From Tubulanus polymorphus (taxonomy: Eukaryota; Animalia; Nemertea): a stretch of 64,000 nucleotides of DNA. Of the stretch, positions 8,267-63,674 are shown piece by piece. The notes beneath the pieces were generated by a model, which was given only the letters and a program-made list of their open reading frames with translations, ran no database searches and was not told where the DNA came from. The translations under genes were made by a program, and so were the position numbers. The stretch is taken from contig NC_134031.1 of NCBI RefSeq assembly GCF_964204645.1, forward strand, positions 20,157,910-20,221,909, written 5' to 3'. Positions within the stretch are counted from its first letter, which is position 1. Every line of letters begins with the position of its first letter.

Positions 8267-9656
8267 ATGGATCAAACGCAGACAGTAGATTATTTGACCA
8301 AACGTCCCAGGACTCCTAACACTAGATATACTGAACTCACACATGAACAGTTGTGCAATATCAAAAATGTAAAAAATCTGCTAATGAAAAAATTCAGGTA
8401 CCAGCATCGATATCACTTTCTATTCTCCATGATCTTCATTTCAGGATCCGCATCCATTTTTCCATTGTTCGAAGCCAGACGGACCTCCAATCTACGGAGA
8501 TGGAAGGGAAGGCGGACGTTTTTATAACGACCGGTACGCGATGGGGATCGCGAGTGAACACAACGTCCGAGGGCCGTCTCTTTCACAGCCGTTCATGTAC
8601 ATAACCGAGAAACATATCCGCGATCCTCCCGCAGAGCATAACTCATCCAGACTAGGAGCTGCATCTACGTGGGGACCTGGAAAAGCTGGCGAGTGTCCAG
8701 TTATCTTCAACCTCGTCATTATTTACAAGAACTCTGAGATTAGAATAAAATAATCTTTTATTTTCTGATATTTTCAGGTGAAAGAACAATGCGACATTTC
8801 ATAGCGGAAGATAAAAACGACTACGGTATGATAGATTGTTTACGAAGACATCCGACAAATCAACCCGGCAATATCATATTCAAATATGGCAGGCCTCATC
8901 ACGGCTATTATGCCCAGAAAAATCCATGTTAGTATTCATAACCACCAAATCAAACACGGCTGAAACACTACTTCAATTTCAGATCAGTTTCTAAATGATC
9001 GGATATTTTCACATCGGTATAAGCCCATCCGATTATAAAAGCTTACCACCAACAAATACGACTGATCTCAACTTTAACCCGAGGGTTAACTCAATTGAAA
9101 ATGAGTTAGTCCCAGGGCTAAAGTTAATTCTAATCTATAAAACTGAGCTCTGGGTTTTACAATTCAGACCACTGCATTAAAGGAACAGTTCATTTAAAAA
9201 GCCACAATTCCATTCAATTTCTACTCGACAGCTATGACTACATGGTTTGACTCGTCATGCCCGATGAATGAAGCTTCCATTATGGTCGTTCCTGAATCGA
9301 AAACGGTTGACATGTATAAAGCAATATCGGAATACGAACAAGCCAAGTGTACACAAAGCCCTGGAGCCGAGTGGCCCGGATTCACTGAATATACCGATCG
9401 ATATCTGCTACATTCAAAAACAGAATCTGCATTAACTGGGTTAGTTTTTCCATTCTCTATTCCTCCTCACAAACTTTAGTCACATTATTTACTATCATGA
9501 CGCCCGAGATATTAATATCGTTGTAGGCTTGAAACTAAGGAACAATACGAAGAAAATTCATCCTCAAAGACAGGGACGCCGTTGCAGGAGAAAACTGTAC
9601 GGATAGAGACTCCAGCTGATTACCAGCAATCAGAACCAATAGCTGTCTGTAATTAA
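8267..9656 (+). CDS. Uncharacterised 277-aa protein, 5 coding exons (possibly ciliary/flagellar)
   Basis: Exons 8267-8368, 8445-8688, 8778-8927, 9232-9439, 9527-9656 join in consistent phases (0,1,1,2) into one open 834-nt frame: MDQTQTVDYLTKRPRTPN...DPHPFFHCSKPDGPPIYGDG...YGRPHHGYYAQKNP...WPGFTEYTDRY...IAVCN*. Intron 2 is best explained by a GC donor (TG|GCGAGT). Confidence 0.8.
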
Positions 9657-49400: not shown

Positions 49401-52400
49401 TTAATGAATCCGGGACCATTCTTACGTCCAAAATCCCACACCGAGAATCCCGGAGATTCGAGTCGAAGTTATCTCATTGAAAATGAACTAACAGTTAACT
49501 GTATGGAACTACTAAAATGTATATTTTCTGCTTATTTCATAGGTTTACGAACTATAGGTGTTATAACAAAATTAGATTTAATGGATGAAGGTACAGACGC
49601 CAAGGACATATTAGAAAATCGAACATTGCCATTACGAAGAGGTTTGTATAATAATAGTAATGATAATGATGATAATAATGATATTTACAAGTCATCTTTA
49701 ACGGTTTAATTTCGCTCATTTACAGGATACGTAGGTGTAGTGAACAGAAGTCAGAAAGATATCGACGGACGGAAAGACATTAAGGCGGCCATGGCAGCCG
49801 AGCGAAAATTCTTCCTCAGTCATCCTTGCTACAGGTTGGTATCGAGATTCACGCGGAAAGAAAAGATTTTTTGCTCAGAAAATTATTTTTAAAAATTTTT
49901 TTAACCTGAAAAAATGATGGAAATGTGTGAAAAATTTTGTTGTGCGCAGTACCTAGGACAAGTGTGAAAAATCTTGAAAAATTATTTAGAAAATGTTAAA
50001 AAATCCTGGAACCAGATGCACAGTCTTTACTTTATTCCAAAAGTGATCCTAGATCCTGAGACAGGATTTGCTATGGAAATGAAGATGGTCTAAGACTGGT
50101 CTTAAATCTAAGACCGGCCCCTGGTATTTTGTTGTTAACTTCGAAGTCTAAAAATACAACATAGGGTTTACTCCCACACTGAAATGCACCTATCATCTTT
50201 GTTGATAAGAGGAAATAGGGCACTCTTAAATTTTGATGGAGTTGTACAAGTCCATCCTTGCTAACAATGTCCTTTGTAGTAACCTGGTTTCTGGACGAAT
50301 GCCTCGTTATGATTTGTTTTCGATATTTCAGACACATGGCAGATAAAATGGGTACGCCATATTTACAACGCGTACTCAACCAGCAACTGACCAATCACAT
50401 TCGCGACACGTTGCCGGCGCTGCGCAACAAACTGCAATCGCAACTGATCAGCATCGAAAAAGACGTCGAGGAATTCAAGAATTTCCGACCGGACGACCCA
50501 GCCCGTAAAACAAAGGCCATGTTACAGTAAGTACCGTTTACTAGGTCATTCATATATCAAGTCAAAGCTGTGTACGAGTAAACTTACTTTGTAGGGATCC
50601 ATGAATATATTTCACTATATCTTACAGATTTAAGCAGGTTTATCTAGGGTTAAAACTCATTTGAAATCCATTATTTTCTCAAATTCGATTACATTGATCG
50701 AAATCACGCCCAGATCTGCACTATATTTCCTTATTTAATTAACCTTCTATTATATCGAACAATTTTTGGTGATAATACTCCAAATGTTAAAGTAGTCAGG
50801 TCCTAATATTGCATATACGAGCGCTACAAAAATTAACTGATTTTGATCTATTTGGCCCACGCTTGAAGAATCAAAAAGATATCCTATTTTTAACTAAATG
50901 TCGTAATGGTATCAATAGAAACCTTGTAAAGAGTAAAAACGTTGATGTTTCAGAATGATTCAACAATTCGGCGTCGATTTTGACGAAAAGATCGAAGGAG
51001 CCGGAACCGAAGTGAACACTGCCGAGTTATCGGGCGGCGCGAAAATCAATCGCATATTCCACGAACGATTTCCATTCGAATTAGTCAAGGTCAGTGCGGA
51101 GACCGTTTGATTTTATAAAACTAGGTATCTTTTTTTTAAATTCATTTACTGTAATGTCTGTGTTTTCTTGGAATTCAGATGGAATTTGATGAGAAGGAAT
51201 TAAGAAAGGAAATAAGCATAGCAATTAAAAATATCCACGCCATCAGGTTAGTGCTGCACTGGCGCTTCAATGCCCGCTTCATACCTTCGAGTTATTGAGG
51301 AAACCAATTTTCTACTCAAAATTGATGAGCCAAAAACAGTTCCATAGTTCAGGCTTGAAAATAAAACCCTGAGATTGTAAAATCGGCTAGTTTTGACTCA
51401 AATGTTAAGAACAGTGCAAGTATTAGTTGACAGAGTCTGTATTTGATATATGGGATGAAACACCTCACAAATAGTCCCTTAGTCACTCTGAGGTCAGTTT
51501 TTCAATTGTAAAATATAATTGAATCTAGAGTTAAGTAATTGAAAATAGTCAAATTTAACTATTTGATATTGGGTTAGGATTTCTGGGGTAAAACAATGTG
51601 AACTGATATTGAGTCCTAGTCTGTAATTTAGCGACGACACTAATCTAGATATTGCTGTATTCATATTTCTATAGGACGGGTCTATTTACACCTGACAAAG
51701 CGTTCGAAACGATCGTCAAACGACAAATCGAGAAATTAAAAGAACCGTGTTTGAAATGCGTCGACATGTGCGTAACAGAATTGACAAATGTCGTACGTAA
51801 ATGTACTGGAAAGGTGCGTATTATCAAGAGGTCCGAGAAGCTACGAGATTTCTCATCATTTTAGGAAACATCAGATACCAGTGTTATAGACTGGTATTAA
51901 GTGGCCGCCCTGTATAAACTGATGAAATCATCTTGATCCAGTTCCACAGTTGTGAGTTAAGATTTGACTCAAGAGTTAACTCATTGAAAATGAACTGATT
52001 TAAACTCAGAGTTAACTCTAACTCACGACTGTAGAACCGGACCCAGTCTACCATCAGCTCATGACATGTCGTTCTATGATTGTGATTTGTTCGTTGTATT
52101 CGTAGATGTGTCGATATCCGCGGTTACGCGAAGAGACCGAACGTATAGTGAACATGTACATTCGCGAACAGGAGTCGAAATCGAAGGAACAATTGATATT
52201 ACTGGTGAATATACAACTCGCCTACATGAATACAAACCACGAGGATTTCATCGGTTTCGCAAAGTGAGTAAATCACCGAGGTCAAACACGGTCGTAGCTC
52301 GGTCGTCCCTAACTGAAAACTGACGGTTTGTAGTTATTCGGGGATCGAATCGGTATCGCGAACATACGCGCTATAAAGAAATTATATTTCAATTGTTTGT

Positions 52401-55400: not shown

Positions 55401-58400
55401 ATGAACAAGCATTCACTCCTGACTTAAGACCCCCCTGCACACGAGCTGAATAATGCGGTGCAGATATGTAGTAGGCCTAAGTGTAGTTGTATGATGCATA
55501 CACGCTTGCCACAGCTCCCTTTACTGAGTGCCTTTTTTGGCTCATATTTGGAGGCCTACAAACTTAGCACAACGCAAGATGCACTTGTGTGCAGGGGCCC
55601 TTATCAGCATATTACAATGATGTTAAACCGAAAAAGGATATAAGTACAAATTGTGTACTCGTATGTTTTTGTACATGTGCATCAGTATAAAGTATATTGA
55701 TTATTTCGGCGTGCGTTTAATGATACTGCTGTAATGACGGTGTTTATGTACCTTTGTTTTCTATGATGTTGCATAAACCGTGGTTGATTTTCTGTAGATA
55801 TATGATGACGATGAAAAATGATTTGTTACCGCATGTTTATCACTGATAATCCGTCTGCTGTTGTCGTTCTACGGGTTATAATAGATGTCGTCCTTCAACT
55901 ATTCTCAAATATCATGTACATGTATTAATAGTGTTTTCTTCTTTGAATGCTCGATTGAAAATATTGCGAGCATCTTAAATACGGCAGCAAACAGCTCTTC
56001 TAATGATGCTTAAAACCCTTTTAGAATTGACGCAGGGCGGCCGCCTTAACTGGAAACCGGGGAATAGTCTGGGAATTTTCATTTCTTTAAAAAAGTGAGG
56101 CTGAAAATATCAGCGACAAGTCGGGGAAATTTGTTGAGATTGCTAAATCGCACGTATGAGCAAACAGTTTATGTATTACATATTTGAATAGATTCAAAAA
56201 TTCACCCTGTAGCTGTATGTTTTTAGTTGCTATTGACAGGTGCTGCCACCTTTCCATGAGGATATATTCTAAATGATAGATGGCTTCTACGTACTTCCTA
56301 AGTCTCGAAGCAATCTAGATATGTTTGAAGAAGAGCTGGTGTAGATTTTTTACAGTTTTCTTCAAGCAACTCGAATAATATTTCTCGTTTATTCCTGTTT
56401 TGACAGGTCATTCGTAAAGGTTGGCTGACGCTGCATAACATCAGTTTCATGAAGGGTGGAGCGAAAGATTTTTGGTTTGTGTTGACCGCTGAATCATTAT
56501 CTTGGTTCAGAGACGAAGAGGTGAGCGTTACGTTCAGACTGATATTAATCTCGGTATTTCAGATTTAATGAGCAAAACCCACAGTTGATGATTTAACAAT
56601 TTATTTTCTGGCAGTTTCAGTCAGAGAAATGAAAAAAATTATCATTTCTCTGATGCTGAAGTTCAGTCAAAACTTTGAAACTGTCAAAATAAACTGCTCA
56701 TTAGGTCTAGAGTTACTTCTTCGGTTGCATTTCAGTTGTTTCCTATATTTTCGAAATATTTTGGCGCTTTTTTATCTAACAGGAAAAAGAAAAGAAGTAC
56801 ATGTTGAATCTGGATAACTTGAAAATACGCGACATGGAATCTGGATTCATGTCTCGACGTCACATGTTCGCGTTGTTCAACACGGAATCGAGGTTAGTTC
56901 ATCGTCTGCTCGCGAGATTCAAACTTGATATCAGTGAGGTGATGGTAATAACGCATTCAACACCCCCTCCCCCTCCCCCTCCCTCCCTCTCCCCGTGATA
57001 ATACAGTGCTGCCCCATTATGAATATACTCGTAGGGTTGGCACTGGAGCTGTTACATAGTCAGCTTTTCTCGAAATGAGCATTGAGAATGAAGCTAAGTT
57101 AGTTCGCATTGCCAGCCAATCGGGAACTGTGTCGCAAAACAACCCCAAAATCCTCCCACGCAGGGATTTGAATGTGATGGCTTTGCAAGACTCGGGTCAG
57201 CGCGTAATAGTGTTGCAGCAAGGTTAATTCTGAGCTGGAATCTCGAGGCATCAGGTTTGAATTCTTGTAGAGAATGTCATTATTCTAATGACAAAAAAAA
57301 TTCAATTTTTATTCAATCTATTCAATTATTGACTCGTAATATGGTTTTTATTCCTCAGTGGATTAATGTTATATGATATATAATGCAAGTCTATATAATC
57401 CTTAGTCTTGTTTCTCTAGTAATAGAATTGTTCGTTTTGTTCATTAAAGTGAAGGGCATGTGAAAATGCGGTACAGTAAATTAAATTGTCTTGAATACCG
57501 AAAAAAAGTGCATGCATCTTTTTTCGCGTCGATTTTTTTTTGTTGAGATTTTGAAACGATTAGTGTGAAATTCATCGGCATGAAGGTTTTTCGGTAAATC
57601 TAAGCACGTAGTTTTCAGACCCTTTCAATCACGCTCCATAAAGACTAGAAGAGCAACCAGAAAAATCTAGAACAAAGAATTGGACAAATTTTGCACAAAA
57701 ACTTCGGAAAATGCTATTGACCATGTTTCTTTATCAATACATGATTCATGAATGATGAGTGAATTGTAGCATTTTAATCCTAGAAATTTCTCCATTCACC
57801 TGCCGATTCACTCGGGGAATTTTGTACAGACATAGAAAACTCAGAGGGACCACTTAAGCTGACTGGGATTGATATTTGTAGTTTCAGTTTTCCTCACTAG
57901 GTGTCTTAGTCGATCTTTTTCTCTGGTGAGTTTTGATTGTGGGCTAGCAATAAGACCACAAATATCAGAACAGCCAACTTATAGATTCTGCTGTGGACGG
58001 TACTCAAGAGCTAATGATAACCTGAAGATAAACAGTTGAACATTTGATACTAGAACAATTCTAGCTGTTGGGTGGCCCTCTAACTTGAACAGGTGCCAAA
58101 GAAAGGAGGCATTCATTATGCGTGGTTTTAGAACTTATGTTAGCCCGTTGCAATCATAACTAACTGTATTTCCTCTATTCTCATTCCTCACATTAAATAT
58201 CGTCTTCTAAACGCGTTTGTTTTAAATGGTGTATCATCATTTTTTTCCATATTTTTCTTTGTCTTTCAGTGTGGAGGGACGAATTAATAGAGTGTATGGT
58301 TTATTTCAGACTTTTTCTTAACACAAAAAAAAACAATATATTCATATATATATATATATATATTTCTATGTATATGTACGATATGGTTCTTTTCACAAAT

Positions 58401-61400
58401 CGGTTGTTGAAGTTAAGGAAAAGGGGAATAATTTGGGAAAATGAAGAAATTGTTCGTTACGATGACAAATAATTATACTCTCATGATTCGTTATCTCTGA
58501 ATATATCGGCCAAACCGTAGCAAGCAGGTGGCTCCCTCTAACTCATGTCTGGTGCATGTCTCTGGCCCCTATGACAATATCATCGATTAGCTGGTAATTT
58601 GATGACATCGATGGGGGATTCAAGGAGGTAGCCATCCTATGAAAAATTCCCCAATGATATCGCTGATGAGGTGGGCAATTTGATGATGTAATTGGGGGAT
58701 TTGAAACGGCAACCATGTTATCGTGAGTATTGTTTGAATGACGGGACACAGCGCCCTCTGTTTGATTCCCTTACGATTTCACTGATGATGTCATCGGGCC
58801 ATTAATGGTTGAAGAAGCCATCTTTTTTCAACGGTGCTTACCTAGCTTTGGAAAAATGTTTCCTTTCGGACGGATTTTTGAAGGGACCATAAACTGCTAT
58901 GCATGCTTTGGCTGATGAATCAATCTTGCTTCGTATCGCTGGCATACTTTGTCGATCTTGTGGCCTTTTCTTTTTCCATCATCCTCGGGCAGCGATTCAA
59001 ACCTGATGGCTTTGTGAGACCAGTGAACCCCTGCATCAGAGTGGCCACACAAATTCACAGAGACCCAATCAAATAAGCCATTGAATATTTGATAAATGAT
59101 TGTGCAGTTTGATTGGCTAATCATGATGTATCCCATACTGTAGTGGCACAGTCTCAGAATGCTATCAGTTTCAAATCCTTGCGAGTGATGATGTCCTTTT
59201 TTCGCGAGTAACGGATAAATAGTGGCTTTGGCAGACGTAGAGTTTGCGCGTGCGTCGGCTCTATAAAAACAACTAAGCGTTTACTGAAGAGCGTTGTAAT
59301 AGCACTGTGACTGATTAACATAATGAAAATACACACACACTGACAAATTGAAGAAAAACCCATAATATAAGGTAAACTAACCGATGGATTTGATGTTTCA
59401 ACTCAAATGTGAGCAATTTTCAAAACAGATTTATTGCAAAATGGTTTGACAAATGAATACAACTCATTATTGTGTTTGAATTAAAACATCCAATCCTCTA
59501 CTAGTTATACTTTGTATTGTGAGTTTTTCTTCGACTGAATTAGACAGTCGCTTGTCTCTAAAAAATCAACACTGACAAAGTGTATGAATTAACCGAGAAG
59601 GATTTAGTTTGAATAGCATGCTTCGTGTCAGGCACTTGCACCGGGAAGGTTTCTAATGATTCAGGTGATAAATCACGTTTCGAGAATTGAACAACACGCA
59701 TAATGTCTGTCTTATTAACCACGGTTAAAAATACTAGTAAAACAGCATGAGAAAAATAACTTTAATTATCAAAGTACAATTCATAGACTCATAATTCATA
59801 GATTAGACTTTAAAAAAATCATTTTTCGGTCAGCCTCATAATTGTAATGTCGTAGATAGTCTCAATGTTTAGTTGCATTCTCGAACCAACAAGCTAAACA
59901 GTCTTTAGATAGCGGCTTTGTAGTTATTCATTGATTTCTGGTCTTTGTACATGTAATTTGTCTATCAGATTGGTTTTTTTTCTGAAATTAATTGTAAAGT
60001 GATTTGTGAGAATATCGGGTTGGTGAAAGGGAAAGTTCACTTACTGATATTAAAACTGCCTATCTCGGTTTTACCTACCATTTTGTTATGGTGTTTGCCA
60101 CGATGTTAGTGTGTGTTTGAACTGGGATATTTTCTGTTAATTGGAATATTGTGCTAACTGGCCTTGGTGAACCGAGGGAAATTCTGGTAATAAGCCCTGT
60201 TTGTTTCCCAATCTTATTGTCTCTATAAAGGTAGAATTTTCTTAAATGAAATCTTGAATGTTATTGGGTTGTCAGACGATGCTGCAGTGGAGACCCGTTA
60301 TAACCCTTCACGCATAGATGTGTTTTCTTACATCTTATGCCAAATGCACTGAGCAACACATAAACCCAAACTATGAAAAATATAAAATGCTTTTCTGACT
60401 TGTTTCATGACTGTGCGCGTCGCTCGAAACATGAAACGCCATTTTACGAAACCCGTGTTTCGATGAAACAGGCCAGGAAAGCATTTCTGTTTCGTCTAAA
60501 GGATTCGTGTCTCGTTGTATTGTTTTCAATATGATTTCAATTCGAGAGATATTTTTGTAAATGTGAAGTTTTCGATGTGTCTCTATTCAGGAATGTCTAT
60601 AAAAGCGATCGTCAACTCGAGTTATCGGCTGAAACTCAAGACGACATCGACAGCTGGAAGGCATCGTTCCTACGCGCCGGTGTTTACCCGGAGCGTAATA
60701 CCGAAGAAACGGCCGATGTAAGTTCTTTGCTTTGAATGAAAAAAAAAAATACTTCATCTTCTACTTTTTTCATTGTTCCAGAAATTGCGAAATATTTACG
60801 ATAATTGAAATAAGAAATAATAGATTTTACATTGATGTTAATTTTCAAATGATGAACTCAAGAGTCAAATTTGAATGGGGAACTGGGTCCACAAATGGTT
60901 GAGGCTATTTGTAAACAAATGATTTCTGGTCAAACGTTTTGTGAAACCGGGCCATGAAATATCTTTTTTTGATCTTTAGTCCAATGAAGTTAAATCGCAG
61001 TAGGTTTCATTCGGACAGGTAGAAAAATGTAGAACTTGGACCCAACTTTTCTGAATGTTTTACCTGGATGGGTTATTTATTATGTGATATCAGAAGTATC
61101 TACCCCTGCGCCATCTATCCATTTAGTTTGTTATTACATGGTAGCATATATGATACCCTCAGCGATTAAGAATTAAATCTAGGGTTCAATCTAGTATTAA
61201 TCGTGAAGGGGCTTAAGAGTTGATTATTTCTACATTAATCTCCGTTAAGCGTTAATGTTTCCAGGAACCGGTTCACAACGAGTCGATGGACCCGGTACAC
61301 GAGCGACAAGTCGAGATCATTCGCAATCTTGTCGAATCGTACATGAAAATAATCTATAAAATAATCAAGGACACTGTGCCGAAGGTCATCATGTGTATAG

Positions 61401-63386
61401 TGATTCATACTGTAAGTGATGGACAAATTGTCTTAATGGGCGTTAACTGTCGCTACGTAGGATAATCCATCTGCTGTAGGATAATCCATCTGCTGTAGGA
61501 TAATCCATCTGCTGTAGGATAATCCATCTGCTGTAGGATAATCTATCTGCTGTAGGATAATCCATCTGCTGTAGGATAATCCATCTGCTGTAGGATAATC
61601 CATCTGCTGTAGGATAATCCATCTGCTGTAGGATAATCCATCTGCTGTAGGATAATCCATCTGCTGTAGGATAATCCATCTGCTATAGTTTCACGTCAGA
61701 CATGAATACCATAACCATCTACCATTTTCTGTGGGCGATTGAATCCACGGTATCATCAAACGGAAGTCAATCTATTTTGAGACACATTCGGCGATGTATT
61801 TGAATTGTGGAGCATGAAAATCCAGTTCATAATTGATCGAATGCCAACAGAGTCGTCAAAAGTTCAATCCAGAACTCCTCGGTTATCATTAGTTTACCGT
61901 CGTGAAACTGTATATAATGCTTAAATACAATACACCGCGTCAAACTAACTTCAACCTAACCAGTAGAATTATTGAATAAACATTGTTTGCGTATCGTTTA
62001 AAAGCCTAGTAAACTGCTTACTTCACGTCACAAAGGTTTTTTCACTTCGCCCTGAAAAATCAGTTGCATTCATTTGAATTTCGAGACTTCATCAGTCGAT
62101 GACGTCCTGTCATCAGTTAACTTATATTCAGATCGGTCTATGAATTAAAAGCTGGTTCCTGGAATCTGAAGACATGAATACTCTAGAGAAATTGAAAGGC
62201 CGAGATCCAGATGGAAAGAAAAGGCATTTCTTGGTTAAAACAGTCAAAGGGCACTAAATAGTCCCTCCTTTGGATTAACTTTTTGAGGAATCCATACAAA
62301 AATGAGCAATTACCGAGTGAATGAATGTCAAATTATCAGGGTTTTACAATCTTAAGTCTCGACAAAAAGGGCAACTTAACTTAATAGGAAGACATGGGTC
62401 CTGATCCCCGAGAACACCCCGTAAATCCACCCTGCGGCTGACAATATGAGTGATTTTGTGAAACGGATCCCAGTTCCGTAGCGGTGAGTTGAGATTTGAC
62501 TCTTTGAGATTCAACATTTGAAACGATCAGCAACCGGGCGTCTTGATCCGAACAGTTCATCGAAATGTTTTCCAATTGCAACTGTTTTTTATAACCAGGG
62601 CATCGAACACGTTTAAACTAACAAGTCACCCGAACATTGTGTATTATTATATATAGGCTAACTCTGAAGTCGGTTCGATGGATCCTCAACTCGAACGACA
62701 AGTAGAAACCATTCGTAATCTAGTCGATTCTTACATGAAAATCATCTATAAAACAATACGCGACATGATCCCGAAAACGATCATGCATTTGATCGTTAAT
62801 CAGGTACGTATCGTAACGTTGGTGATGTAAAGGGTTAACGCCGCGCTTGAAGTACCCAGCAGTCACCTGCCACCGGTTCAGATCACATCTGCATGGAATA
62901 TTGTGTTCACCTGAACCAAAATTTCCTCACTTCGCTTTCAACAAATATTCACGACGACCATTTATCTATTATTCTCCAATCTGTGCATTCGTACATACTT
63001 TGGTTCAGCTTGAGCCAACACTGTGATGGTTGACTTGTGCTTAAAATTAATTTTACACTAAAGCTCAATACCTGCTTCAACCAGTTGAAACACCATTCGG
63101 CTCCTGATTCAAAGCCTGTGAGATACTTAGCTGATAAGAAGACTCGATTCTTCTAACACTTTAAACAATTAGCTTTACCGTGTTATTAACTTCGTAGCCA
63201 TATTGATTATTTCATTCACCTTGAGTACAAGTGCATCAATAAAAAAATTCTACCATTCTGAATGATTTCGTAATTTGCCACTTTTTCATCGGTAATTATT
63301 TGAATGTCATTATTTTCGAAAAATTTCAGGTCAAAGAATTCTTGAAGACGGAAATGATCGCGCAGCTGTATTCAACTGGAGACCAG
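37420..63386 (+). CDS. DNM: Classical dynamin (GTPase-middle-PH-GED); 3' end including the PRD lies beyond the window
   Basis: Exons 37420-37583, 45843-45916, 46208-46357, 46996-47199, 49543-49641, 49726-49834, 50332-50526, 50954-51089, 51179-51246, 51675-51813, 52106-52263, 52410-52458, 56407-56520, 56783-56892, 60591-60717, (61265-61411 or 62657-62803), 63330-63386; phases consistent. Motifs: [61 protein letters not shown] domain VIRKGWL...[33 protein letters not shown]. Confidence 0.97.
37989..38373. repeat. ~190-bp tandem duplication including a MITE fragment
   Basis: 37989-38176 is nearly identical to 38177-38373. The internal part is related in reverse orientation to the 36617-36734 MITE. 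Confidence 0.9.
39116..39277. mobile_element. Near-perfect palindromic MITE
   Basis: 44-bp IR GTTCTAGTAAGTCTCGTTCRCCCTCAGGGGTCAGTTCCACAGTT with 1 mismatch. The inner part is related, in opposite orientation, to ~51937-52044. Confidence 0.75.
39679..39780. repeat. 23-bp minisatellite, ~4.5 copies
   Basis: CCTAGTCTTYATGATAAAATGTA units. Confidence 0.93.
40273..40286. promoter_or_regulatory. RFX X-box-like site in dynamin intron 1
   Basis: GTTTCCATGGTTAC inside a CpG-rich stretch; a weaker GTTTCTATGGTATC lies at 42252-42265. Confidence 0.4.
40708..41125. repeat. 30-bp minisatellite, ~14 copies
   Basis: CGCGGTGCGATGTATCGAGCTGTGTTATAG units. Confidence 0.97.
48012..48683 (-). CDS. Intronless 223-aa ORF nested antisense in dynamin intron 4 (coiled-coil protein of unknown family)
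   Basis: True ATG in AAAAAAATG context; non-repetitive 672-nt frame, more GC-rich than the flanking intron; heptad region ([40 protein letters not shown]); DAETQT motif; minus-strand AATAAA about 105 nt past the stop. Confidence 0.65.
   Translation of the reverse strand: MNALPQAVIVALQEAGYSSKPTSWSIHTDDGGIRVNLTWGQPFEIQSQSEPQWINTMRRDHQKLLDSIAEGITLLESKTAEASAAVKESASTRTSNASVMCKPVTANSAIQAVRATRDAETQTECRIISVEEAREKEDDLTERLDDLDAELDERDKKVDRQRREIRGLLSKLDRLKMRDNESAYDSDRDIDNGNDYDCDGYYDHQYIKRKYKVDGRLRINNYS
54357..54368 (+). other. Candidate 12-nt dynamin microexon (LKFQ) between the middle and PH domains
   Basis: ~40-nt U-rich tract ending TTTTAG, then CTG AAG TTT CAG, then GTACTA; phase 0 within a phase-0 intron. 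Confidence 0.55.
61265..61411 (+). other. Dynamin GED exon copy A (divergent)
   Basis: TTTCCAG|...|GTAAGT, 147 nt, open: [49 protein letters not shown]. Confidence 0.88.
61457..61687. repeat. 19-bp minisatellite, 12 copies
   Basis: GTAGGATAATCCATCTGCT units, nearly perfect. Confidence 0.97.
62657..62803 (+). other. Dynamin GED exon copy B (canonical-like)
   Basis: TATATAG|...CAG|GTACGT, 147 nt: [49 protein letters not shown]. Confidence 0.93.
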
Positions 63387-63668: not shown

Positions 63669-63674
63669 AGTTTG
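63669..63674 (+). other. Candidate 6-nt dynamin microexon (SL) within the GED
   Basis: TTTTACTTTTTCCCTCATTGTCCTGCAG|AGT TTG|GTGAGT: strong acceptor and consensus donor 6 nt apart, phase 0, following the exon that ends GDQ. Confidence 0.7.

Follow-up and report, generated by a model that had tools for sequence, protein, structure and literature searches.

The stalk of dynamin decides dimerisation and polymerisation of the protein around membrane necks, and vertebrates diversify this stalk by three genes and by a switch between the alternative exons 10a and 10b. The two versions of exon 10 in Dnm1 differ at 14 of 46 residues, and invertebrate dynamins are described as being without this pair, and in general as having a single isoform at this site (PMC2916854). 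Here, we analysed a 64,000-nucleotide (nt) window of the nemertean Tubulanus polymorphus (contig NC_134031.1, positions 20,157,910 to 20,221,909; coordinates below are those of the window) that holds a dynamin gene, and we describe two homologous exons, A and B, for the first helix of the GED, which is part of the stalk. Like the vertebrate exons of DNM1 and DNM2, A and B are tandem duplicates that match in length and belong to a classical dynamin, they encode alternative versions of a stalk helix, and a minority of residues differ between them. They are unlike 10a/10b in their position, as the vertebrate pair lies in the middle domain (around residue 408) and A and B cover the first GED helix (residues 644-692). 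Moreover, use of 10a and 10b is documented by RNA and genetics, whereas the pair presented here is known from genomic sequence alone. The equivalent of exon 10 (51675-51813) is single-copy in this genome, as had been stated in a sequence-only reading of the window made before this analysis; its sole other genome match is to a paralogue with 43% identity that lies on a different contig.

The pair also resembles the clusters of mutually exclusive exons that arise from tandem exon duplication and are recognised by the Kassiopeia criteria (PMC3923563), in which the exons are adjacent, equal in length, alike in frame and splice-site pattern, and homologous. All of these sequence features are found in A and B (neighbouring exons, 147 versus 147 nt, phase 0/0, AG...GT borders, homologous), but unlike in such clusters exclusivity is enforced neither by the frame nor sterically in this genome. 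The choice between exclusive exons is controlled by RNA pairing of docking sites and selectors in Dscam1, 14-3-3 zeta and human dynamin-1 (cited in PMC3923563). In the one literature collection that we searched, we found no account of a dynamin with an alternative GED exon, only papers on vertebrate exon 10. The A/B pair is a probable further case of a known kind, that of tandem alternative exons, and we lean towards the view that it is a functional pair that lets the first GED helix be made with either of two interface-2 ends.

Two versions of the first GED-helix exon

Exon A (61265-61411, + strand), the divergent copy, and exon B (62657-62803, + strand), the canonical one, are each 147 nt long, in phase 0 and open over 49 codons. 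Both have good splice sites with AG/GT borders, which read tttccag/GAACCG (acceptor) and CATACT/gtaagt (donor) for A, and tatatag/GCTAAC and AATCAG/gtacgt for B. The sequence-only reading had proposed two homologous exons of just this kind at these very positions, and this part of it is borne out in full. The pair is framed by two constitutive exons on the + strand. The upstream one (60591-60717) contains the end of the PH domain and a linker, ends in phase 0 with the donor GAT/gtaagt, and is 65-73% identical to the counterpart exon in four loci of other animals that are introduced below (L008, L010, L019 and L020). In the downstream one (63330-63386; 57 nt, phases 0/0), the GED helix continues after either A or B. 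The introns between these four exons measure, in order, 547, 1245 and 526 nt. Inclusion of A alone or of B alone results in the canonical reading of PH-linker, first GED helix and "VKEF...LYSTGDQ". When the entire assembly (268 Mb) was searched in all six frames, just these two copies of the exon were retrieved. As the further matches were weak (E ≥ 0.5), there is one classical dynamin gene in the assembly.

The two exons align without gaps, with differences at 51 of 147 bases and with 28 of 49 residues in common (65% nucleotide and 57% amino-acid identity); 11 of these 28 residues are specified by different codons. Both products score above the gathering score (21.4 bits) of the Pfam GED family PF02212, A with 35.9 and B with 47.4 bits. 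Residues were numbered by alignment of each exon to solved dynamin-1 chains, by which the 49-residue segment corresponds to residues 644-692 of human dynamin-1, that is, to the first GED helix. Against residues 646-691 in the solved structures, B reaches 68.5 bits and A 39.9 bits. An exhaustive search with A of a library of 1.84 billion representative proteins gave 466 matches at E-values up to 0.001, and all of the best 150 of these 466 score higher against B than against A. Since B outscores A in all 150 listed proteins, B is, as judged by these scores, the canonical and conserved housekeeping version, and A has evolved faster, apparently still under constraint.

Within the helix core (residues 9-49 of the exon products), the differences between A and B lie mostly in the C-terminal half (dynamin-1 residues 676-692), and they include T676I, R678K, T684V, H687C, L688I and N691H as well as neighbouring positions. 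Thus, His687-Leu688 of dynamin-1 is replaced by Cys-Ile in exon A, and the change of a conserved MH to MC that had been noted from the letters of the window is real and falls on stalk interface 2. The triple exchange I481D/H687D/L688S affects stalk interface 2 and leaves filament assembly deficient (Supplementary Table 1, PMC8437954). As this mutant includes H687 and L688, the H687C change of exon A affects a residue that is known to matter for the cross-dimer. At the position of I690, A has Ile and B has Val; the I690K mutation of dynamin-1 leads to a defect in self-assembly.

The gene that carries the pair lies on the + strand, starts at about 45850 and extends beyond the end of the window. 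Open reading frame (ORF) pieces for the GTPase and middle domains are seen from about 45850 on, PH-domain exons are present at about 56738-56905 and, as mentioned, at 60591-60717, and the exons for the C-terminal part of the GED and the proline-rich region follow in the extended locus at about 64474-64644 and 65033-65257, where they match spliced dynamin fragments. A PH domain and a proline-rich tail in the same gene identify a classical dynamin, with the order GTPase-middle-PH-GED-PRD, and set it apart from Drp1-type proteins. Two further features were observed in the introns around the pair. A 19-nt minisatellite (61457-61688, + strand; unit GTAGGATAATCCATCTGCT, 12.2 copies) begins 46 nt past the donor of exon A. 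It is young, with 98% matches between units, and was found in the genome only at this locus; every unit holds CTGCTG, and short-read contigs break across it. Past the downstream exon, a 6-nt candidate microexon for Ser-Leu is present at 63669-63674 with the borders cctgcag/AGTTTG/gtgagt. The junction GDQ/NSMMEES that is formed without it already fits other dynamins, so that the microexon would be optional.

Age of the duplication and probable constraint on exon A

To judge how A has evolved relative to B, the two exons were compared by the Nei-Gojobori method. Over the 49 codons, synonymous divergence (dS) is 0.94 and nonsynonymous divergence (dN) 0.38, which gives a ratio (omega) of 0.40; in the helix core, dS is 1.0-1.1, dN 0.27-0.29 and omega 0.26. 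Taken together, the estimates of dS range from 0.94 to 1.12. A pairwise omega of about 0.5 is expected if A drifted neutrally while B was constrained. We also simulated neutral decay, with B as the starting sequence, the base composition of the introns, and substitutions only (indels ignored). At 0.4 substitutions per site, 0.5% of the runs ended with a frame that was open and with a BLOSUM similarity as high as that observed, and at 0.5 per site, equal to half of the measured dS, none of 5000 runs did so. Indels, if included, would be expected to cut the neutral odds further. The comparison supports an old duplication (dS of about 1) after which the frame, the length and the splice sites of A were preserved. 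A has fewer amino-acid changes than neutrality predicts, and the figures are suggestive of selection on A. The earlier proposal of an old duplication under selection, with frame and length kept, is in line with both results.

One short block stands out in the alignment. Between 61340 and 61365 in A and 62732 and 62757 in B, 26 nt with the codons for Y-M-K-I-I-Y-K differ at only 2 bases, while more than half of the synonymous sites outside the block have changed; the block was picked post hoc from the alignment. Local gene conversion may be the cause of this near-identity, or else an exonic signal common to both copies. If the similarity of A and B as a whole had been kept by occasional gene conversion, and not by selection on the product of A, the low dN would be an artefact, and the near-identity of the block is what speaks for this explanation. 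However, 49 base differences lie outside of the block, many of them synonymous, so that any conversion must have been local and old. In addition, the block was chosen after the alignment had been viewed, and there are few codon choices for its residues in an AT-rich genome. We therefore regard gene conversion as a very improbable source of the low dN, and selection on the product of A as the better account of it.

The same exon in other invertebrates

We scanned the contigs behind genomic exon fragments from the protein searches with the peptides of A and B. A divergent copy upstream and a canonical copy downstream were found in at least three other invertebrate lineages. These are represented by L007 (Logan SRR30767268); by L008 (GCA_029980185.1) together with L009, a lake-metagenome contig in which the arrangement and the exon sequences are as in L008, and L014 from a second species of the same lineage; and by L010 (ENA ERZ25069853). 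In all of them, the same exon is concerned, and upstream and downstream copies end at the same donor position. The spacing between the copies is different, with 39 nt in L007 (L007:1164-1202), about 210-330 nt in L008/L009/L014 and about 380 nt in L010 versus 1245 nt in the gene described here. The equivalent of His687 is Cys in exon A, Arg or Lys in the upstream copies of the L008 lineage and Arg in that of L007, and it is unchanged in L010. Hence, it is altered in the upstream copy in three of four lineages.

The L008 lineage offers a comparison between species. The introns of L008 and L014 cannot be aligned, and both GED exons align. Their upstream copies differ at a proportion of 0.85 of synonymous sites (pS), which is saturated, and of 0.115 of nonsynonymous sites (pN), and they share derived residues including ..YRLVI... 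As pS is saturated, pN is low and derived residues are shared, the alternative exon in this lineage is orthologous between the two species, old and clearly under strong purifying selection. An upstream exon of this YR/YK type also occurs in two further species, P0257 and P0265 (the latter with YK for YR), so that this copy is kept across four species. In L010, the two copies compared with each other give a pS of 0.93 and a pN of 0.146. The upstream copy of L007 is much more degenerate, with an omega of 0.68. L007:867-1421 is all one open frame, and the two copies in L007 may either exclude each other sterically or be read through as a single long exon. In the L008 intron that follows the PH exon and precedes the upstream GED copy, we observed an inverted repeat of 90 nt (L008:8888-8977 and 9115-9204, 90% identical), which brackets neither GED exon. 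A transcript-like ORF of 271 amino acids, P0001, carries three identical head-to-tail repeats of the GED exon, followed by the C-terminal part; exon repetition, read-through of a circular RNA and an artefact of assembly are all possible explanations.

A single GED exon is flanked by the same two exons in six further sampled lineages (L011/L012, L015, L016, L017/L018, L019 and L020/L021). Divergent "MF-type" exons in L015, L016 and L017/L018 were considered as partners of the A type and rejected, as each is the sole GED exon of its taxon. With a pair in some lineages and a single copy in six, the distribution of the pair across animals is patchy. Judging from these contigs, the GED exon is duplicated and retained in several invertebrate lineages.

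Whether the duplications go back to one event was addressed with an alignment of the 41-residue cores. The resulting tree does not resolve how the copies branch. On the same alignment, approximately unbiased (AU) tests rejected neither one clade that unites every upstream copy (p = 0.54) nor a sister relation of A and B, as expected for an origin within the species (p = 0.57). The upstream copies of L007, the L008 lineage and L010 have no clear derived residues in common with A. The sequence-only reading had this lineage evolve the switch independently, a claim that is not supported in this form, with the same layout in at least three other lineages and neither origin rejected. It is possible, though we put this forward only tentatively, that in invertebrates the exon for the first GED helix of classical dynamin has been duplicated in tandem repeatedly or very long ago, and that the resulting pairs switch isoforms at stalk interface 2 (His687/Leu688), as an undescribed counterpart of vertebrate exons 10a/10b.

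Probable exon choice and its possible consequences for dynamin assembly

If A and B are a functional pair, one of the two would be chosen per mRNA, and two dynamin isoforms would arise, with most of their differences in the C-terminal half of the first GED helix. As this half holds His687/Leu688, or Cys/Ile in A, the exchange may tune stalk dimerisation and, by this, assembly, similar to what exons 10a/10b do for the middle-domain part of the stalk. The two exons are probably used one at a time, changing the dimer contact. This is suggested by a structural argument, according to which the stalk would gain an entire helix by joint inclusion and lose one by joint skipping.

Alternatively, A may be a cassette exon that is sometimes included along with B, or both exons may sometimes be skipped, so that some tissues would make dynamins of greater or smaller length. 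As 147 nt equals 3 x 49, inclusion of A and B together stays in frame, as does skipping of both; the frame does not enforce exclusivity, and the products would escape nonsense-mediated decay. Splicing of A to B is likewise feasible, as the intron between them is, at 1245 nt, long enough, and therefore imposes no steric block; the splice sites are ordinary GT-AG. On the other hand, duplication or deletion of a 49-residue helix in the four-helix stalk is expected to break the fold, as deduced from the matched dynamin structures. In L007, moreover, A-to-B splicing would have to remove the 39-nt spacer, which is probably below the minimal size of a spliceable intron, the classic steric route to exclusivity. 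We thus consider use as a cassette to be rather improbable, and one-at-a-time use of A and B the more plausible mode.

A weak candidate for the selecting mechanism is an intronic RNA duplex that would loop out exon A. Its 5' arm (60839-60877, + strand) lies in the intron upstream of A and its 3' arm (62487-62524, + strand) about 135 nt upstream of the acceptor of B. The two arms may pair over 35 bp at -34.8 kcal/mol, beating 20 of 20 shuffles; they are recovered as a self-inverted blastn match in the 2.6-kb region with an E-value of 2e-5, and the 5' arm is unique in the genome. As in docking-site/selector systems, unique complementarity would connect the intron before the cluster with the intron just before B. 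Unlike in these systems, there is one pair only, with no second selector found, and it does not stand out from the inverted pairs of the window. Because a scan of the entire window revealed eight comparable spaced inverted pairs (about 1 per 8 kb), the duplex being no rarer than these, it is treated as a lead. No counterpart of the duplex was found in L007, L008 or L014.

This background of inverted pairs, the absence of the duplex from the three other loci and the preserved frame upon joint inclusion all weigh against a functional and exclusive pair, and there are further results to be counted on this side. Selection on A is read from 49 codons in a single pairwise comparison of A with B. In a tree of 156 rows, the terminal branch of A is about four times as long as that of B (0.59 vs 0.14). 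No protein among the best 150 of the 466 library matches is closer to A than to B, and a word-indexed search of short proteins found no short ORF resembling A. Among the runs examined for the same species label, which comprise four DNA-type runs and one guessed to be RNA, the latter (X5) yielded zero contigs on the 6-kb locus 60400-66399. A recent loss of function or recent silencing of A is possible.

Several of these results would also be expected if A were a dead or dying duplicate that is ignored by the spliceosome, such that B alone is used and only one version of the GED is made. The missing contig from the run guessed to be RNA, the lower similarity of A to dynamin-1 and its long terminal branch all point this way, as does the upstream copy of L007, which looks partly degenerate. 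A lesion was seen as well: DNA contigs from two samples span exons A and B and agree with the window sequence throughout both, the one exception being a low-depth contig of run X3 (depth 4.8) with a 2-nt deletion within exon A at 61273 (L013:874). The same contig has a 3-nt insertion 51 nt upstream of this deletion. Yet, both changes are absent from X1 and from X2, which comes from the same sample and shows no deletion at a depth of 28.7; they are probably an error, but could be a rare allele. What further speaks against a dead exon is that A, in spite of a dS of about 1 to B, is open and unchanged in length, with a donor that fits the consensus (gtaagt) and a good acceptor, that its substitutions are mostly conservative, and that it passes the Pfam GED cut-off on its own. 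Neutral simulations at matching divergence almost never keep such similarity, and purifying selection is clear on the upstream copies in two other lineages. A dead exon A is therefore unlikely in our view, and we retain the reading of A and B as a functional alternative pair.

For annotation, this reading would mean that dynamin gene models should carry two isoforms instead of one exon, both exons or neither. The recurrence of the pair in other invertebrates and the functional weight of the changed residues add to its interest, and the two versions would be naturally occurring variants with which the tuning of assembly by interface 2 could be tested. If true, an alternative first GED helix is a second, independent route to diversity of the stalk, here from one gene. 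Should the changed interface favour pairing of like with like, two separate polymers of dynamin could be built from a single gene.

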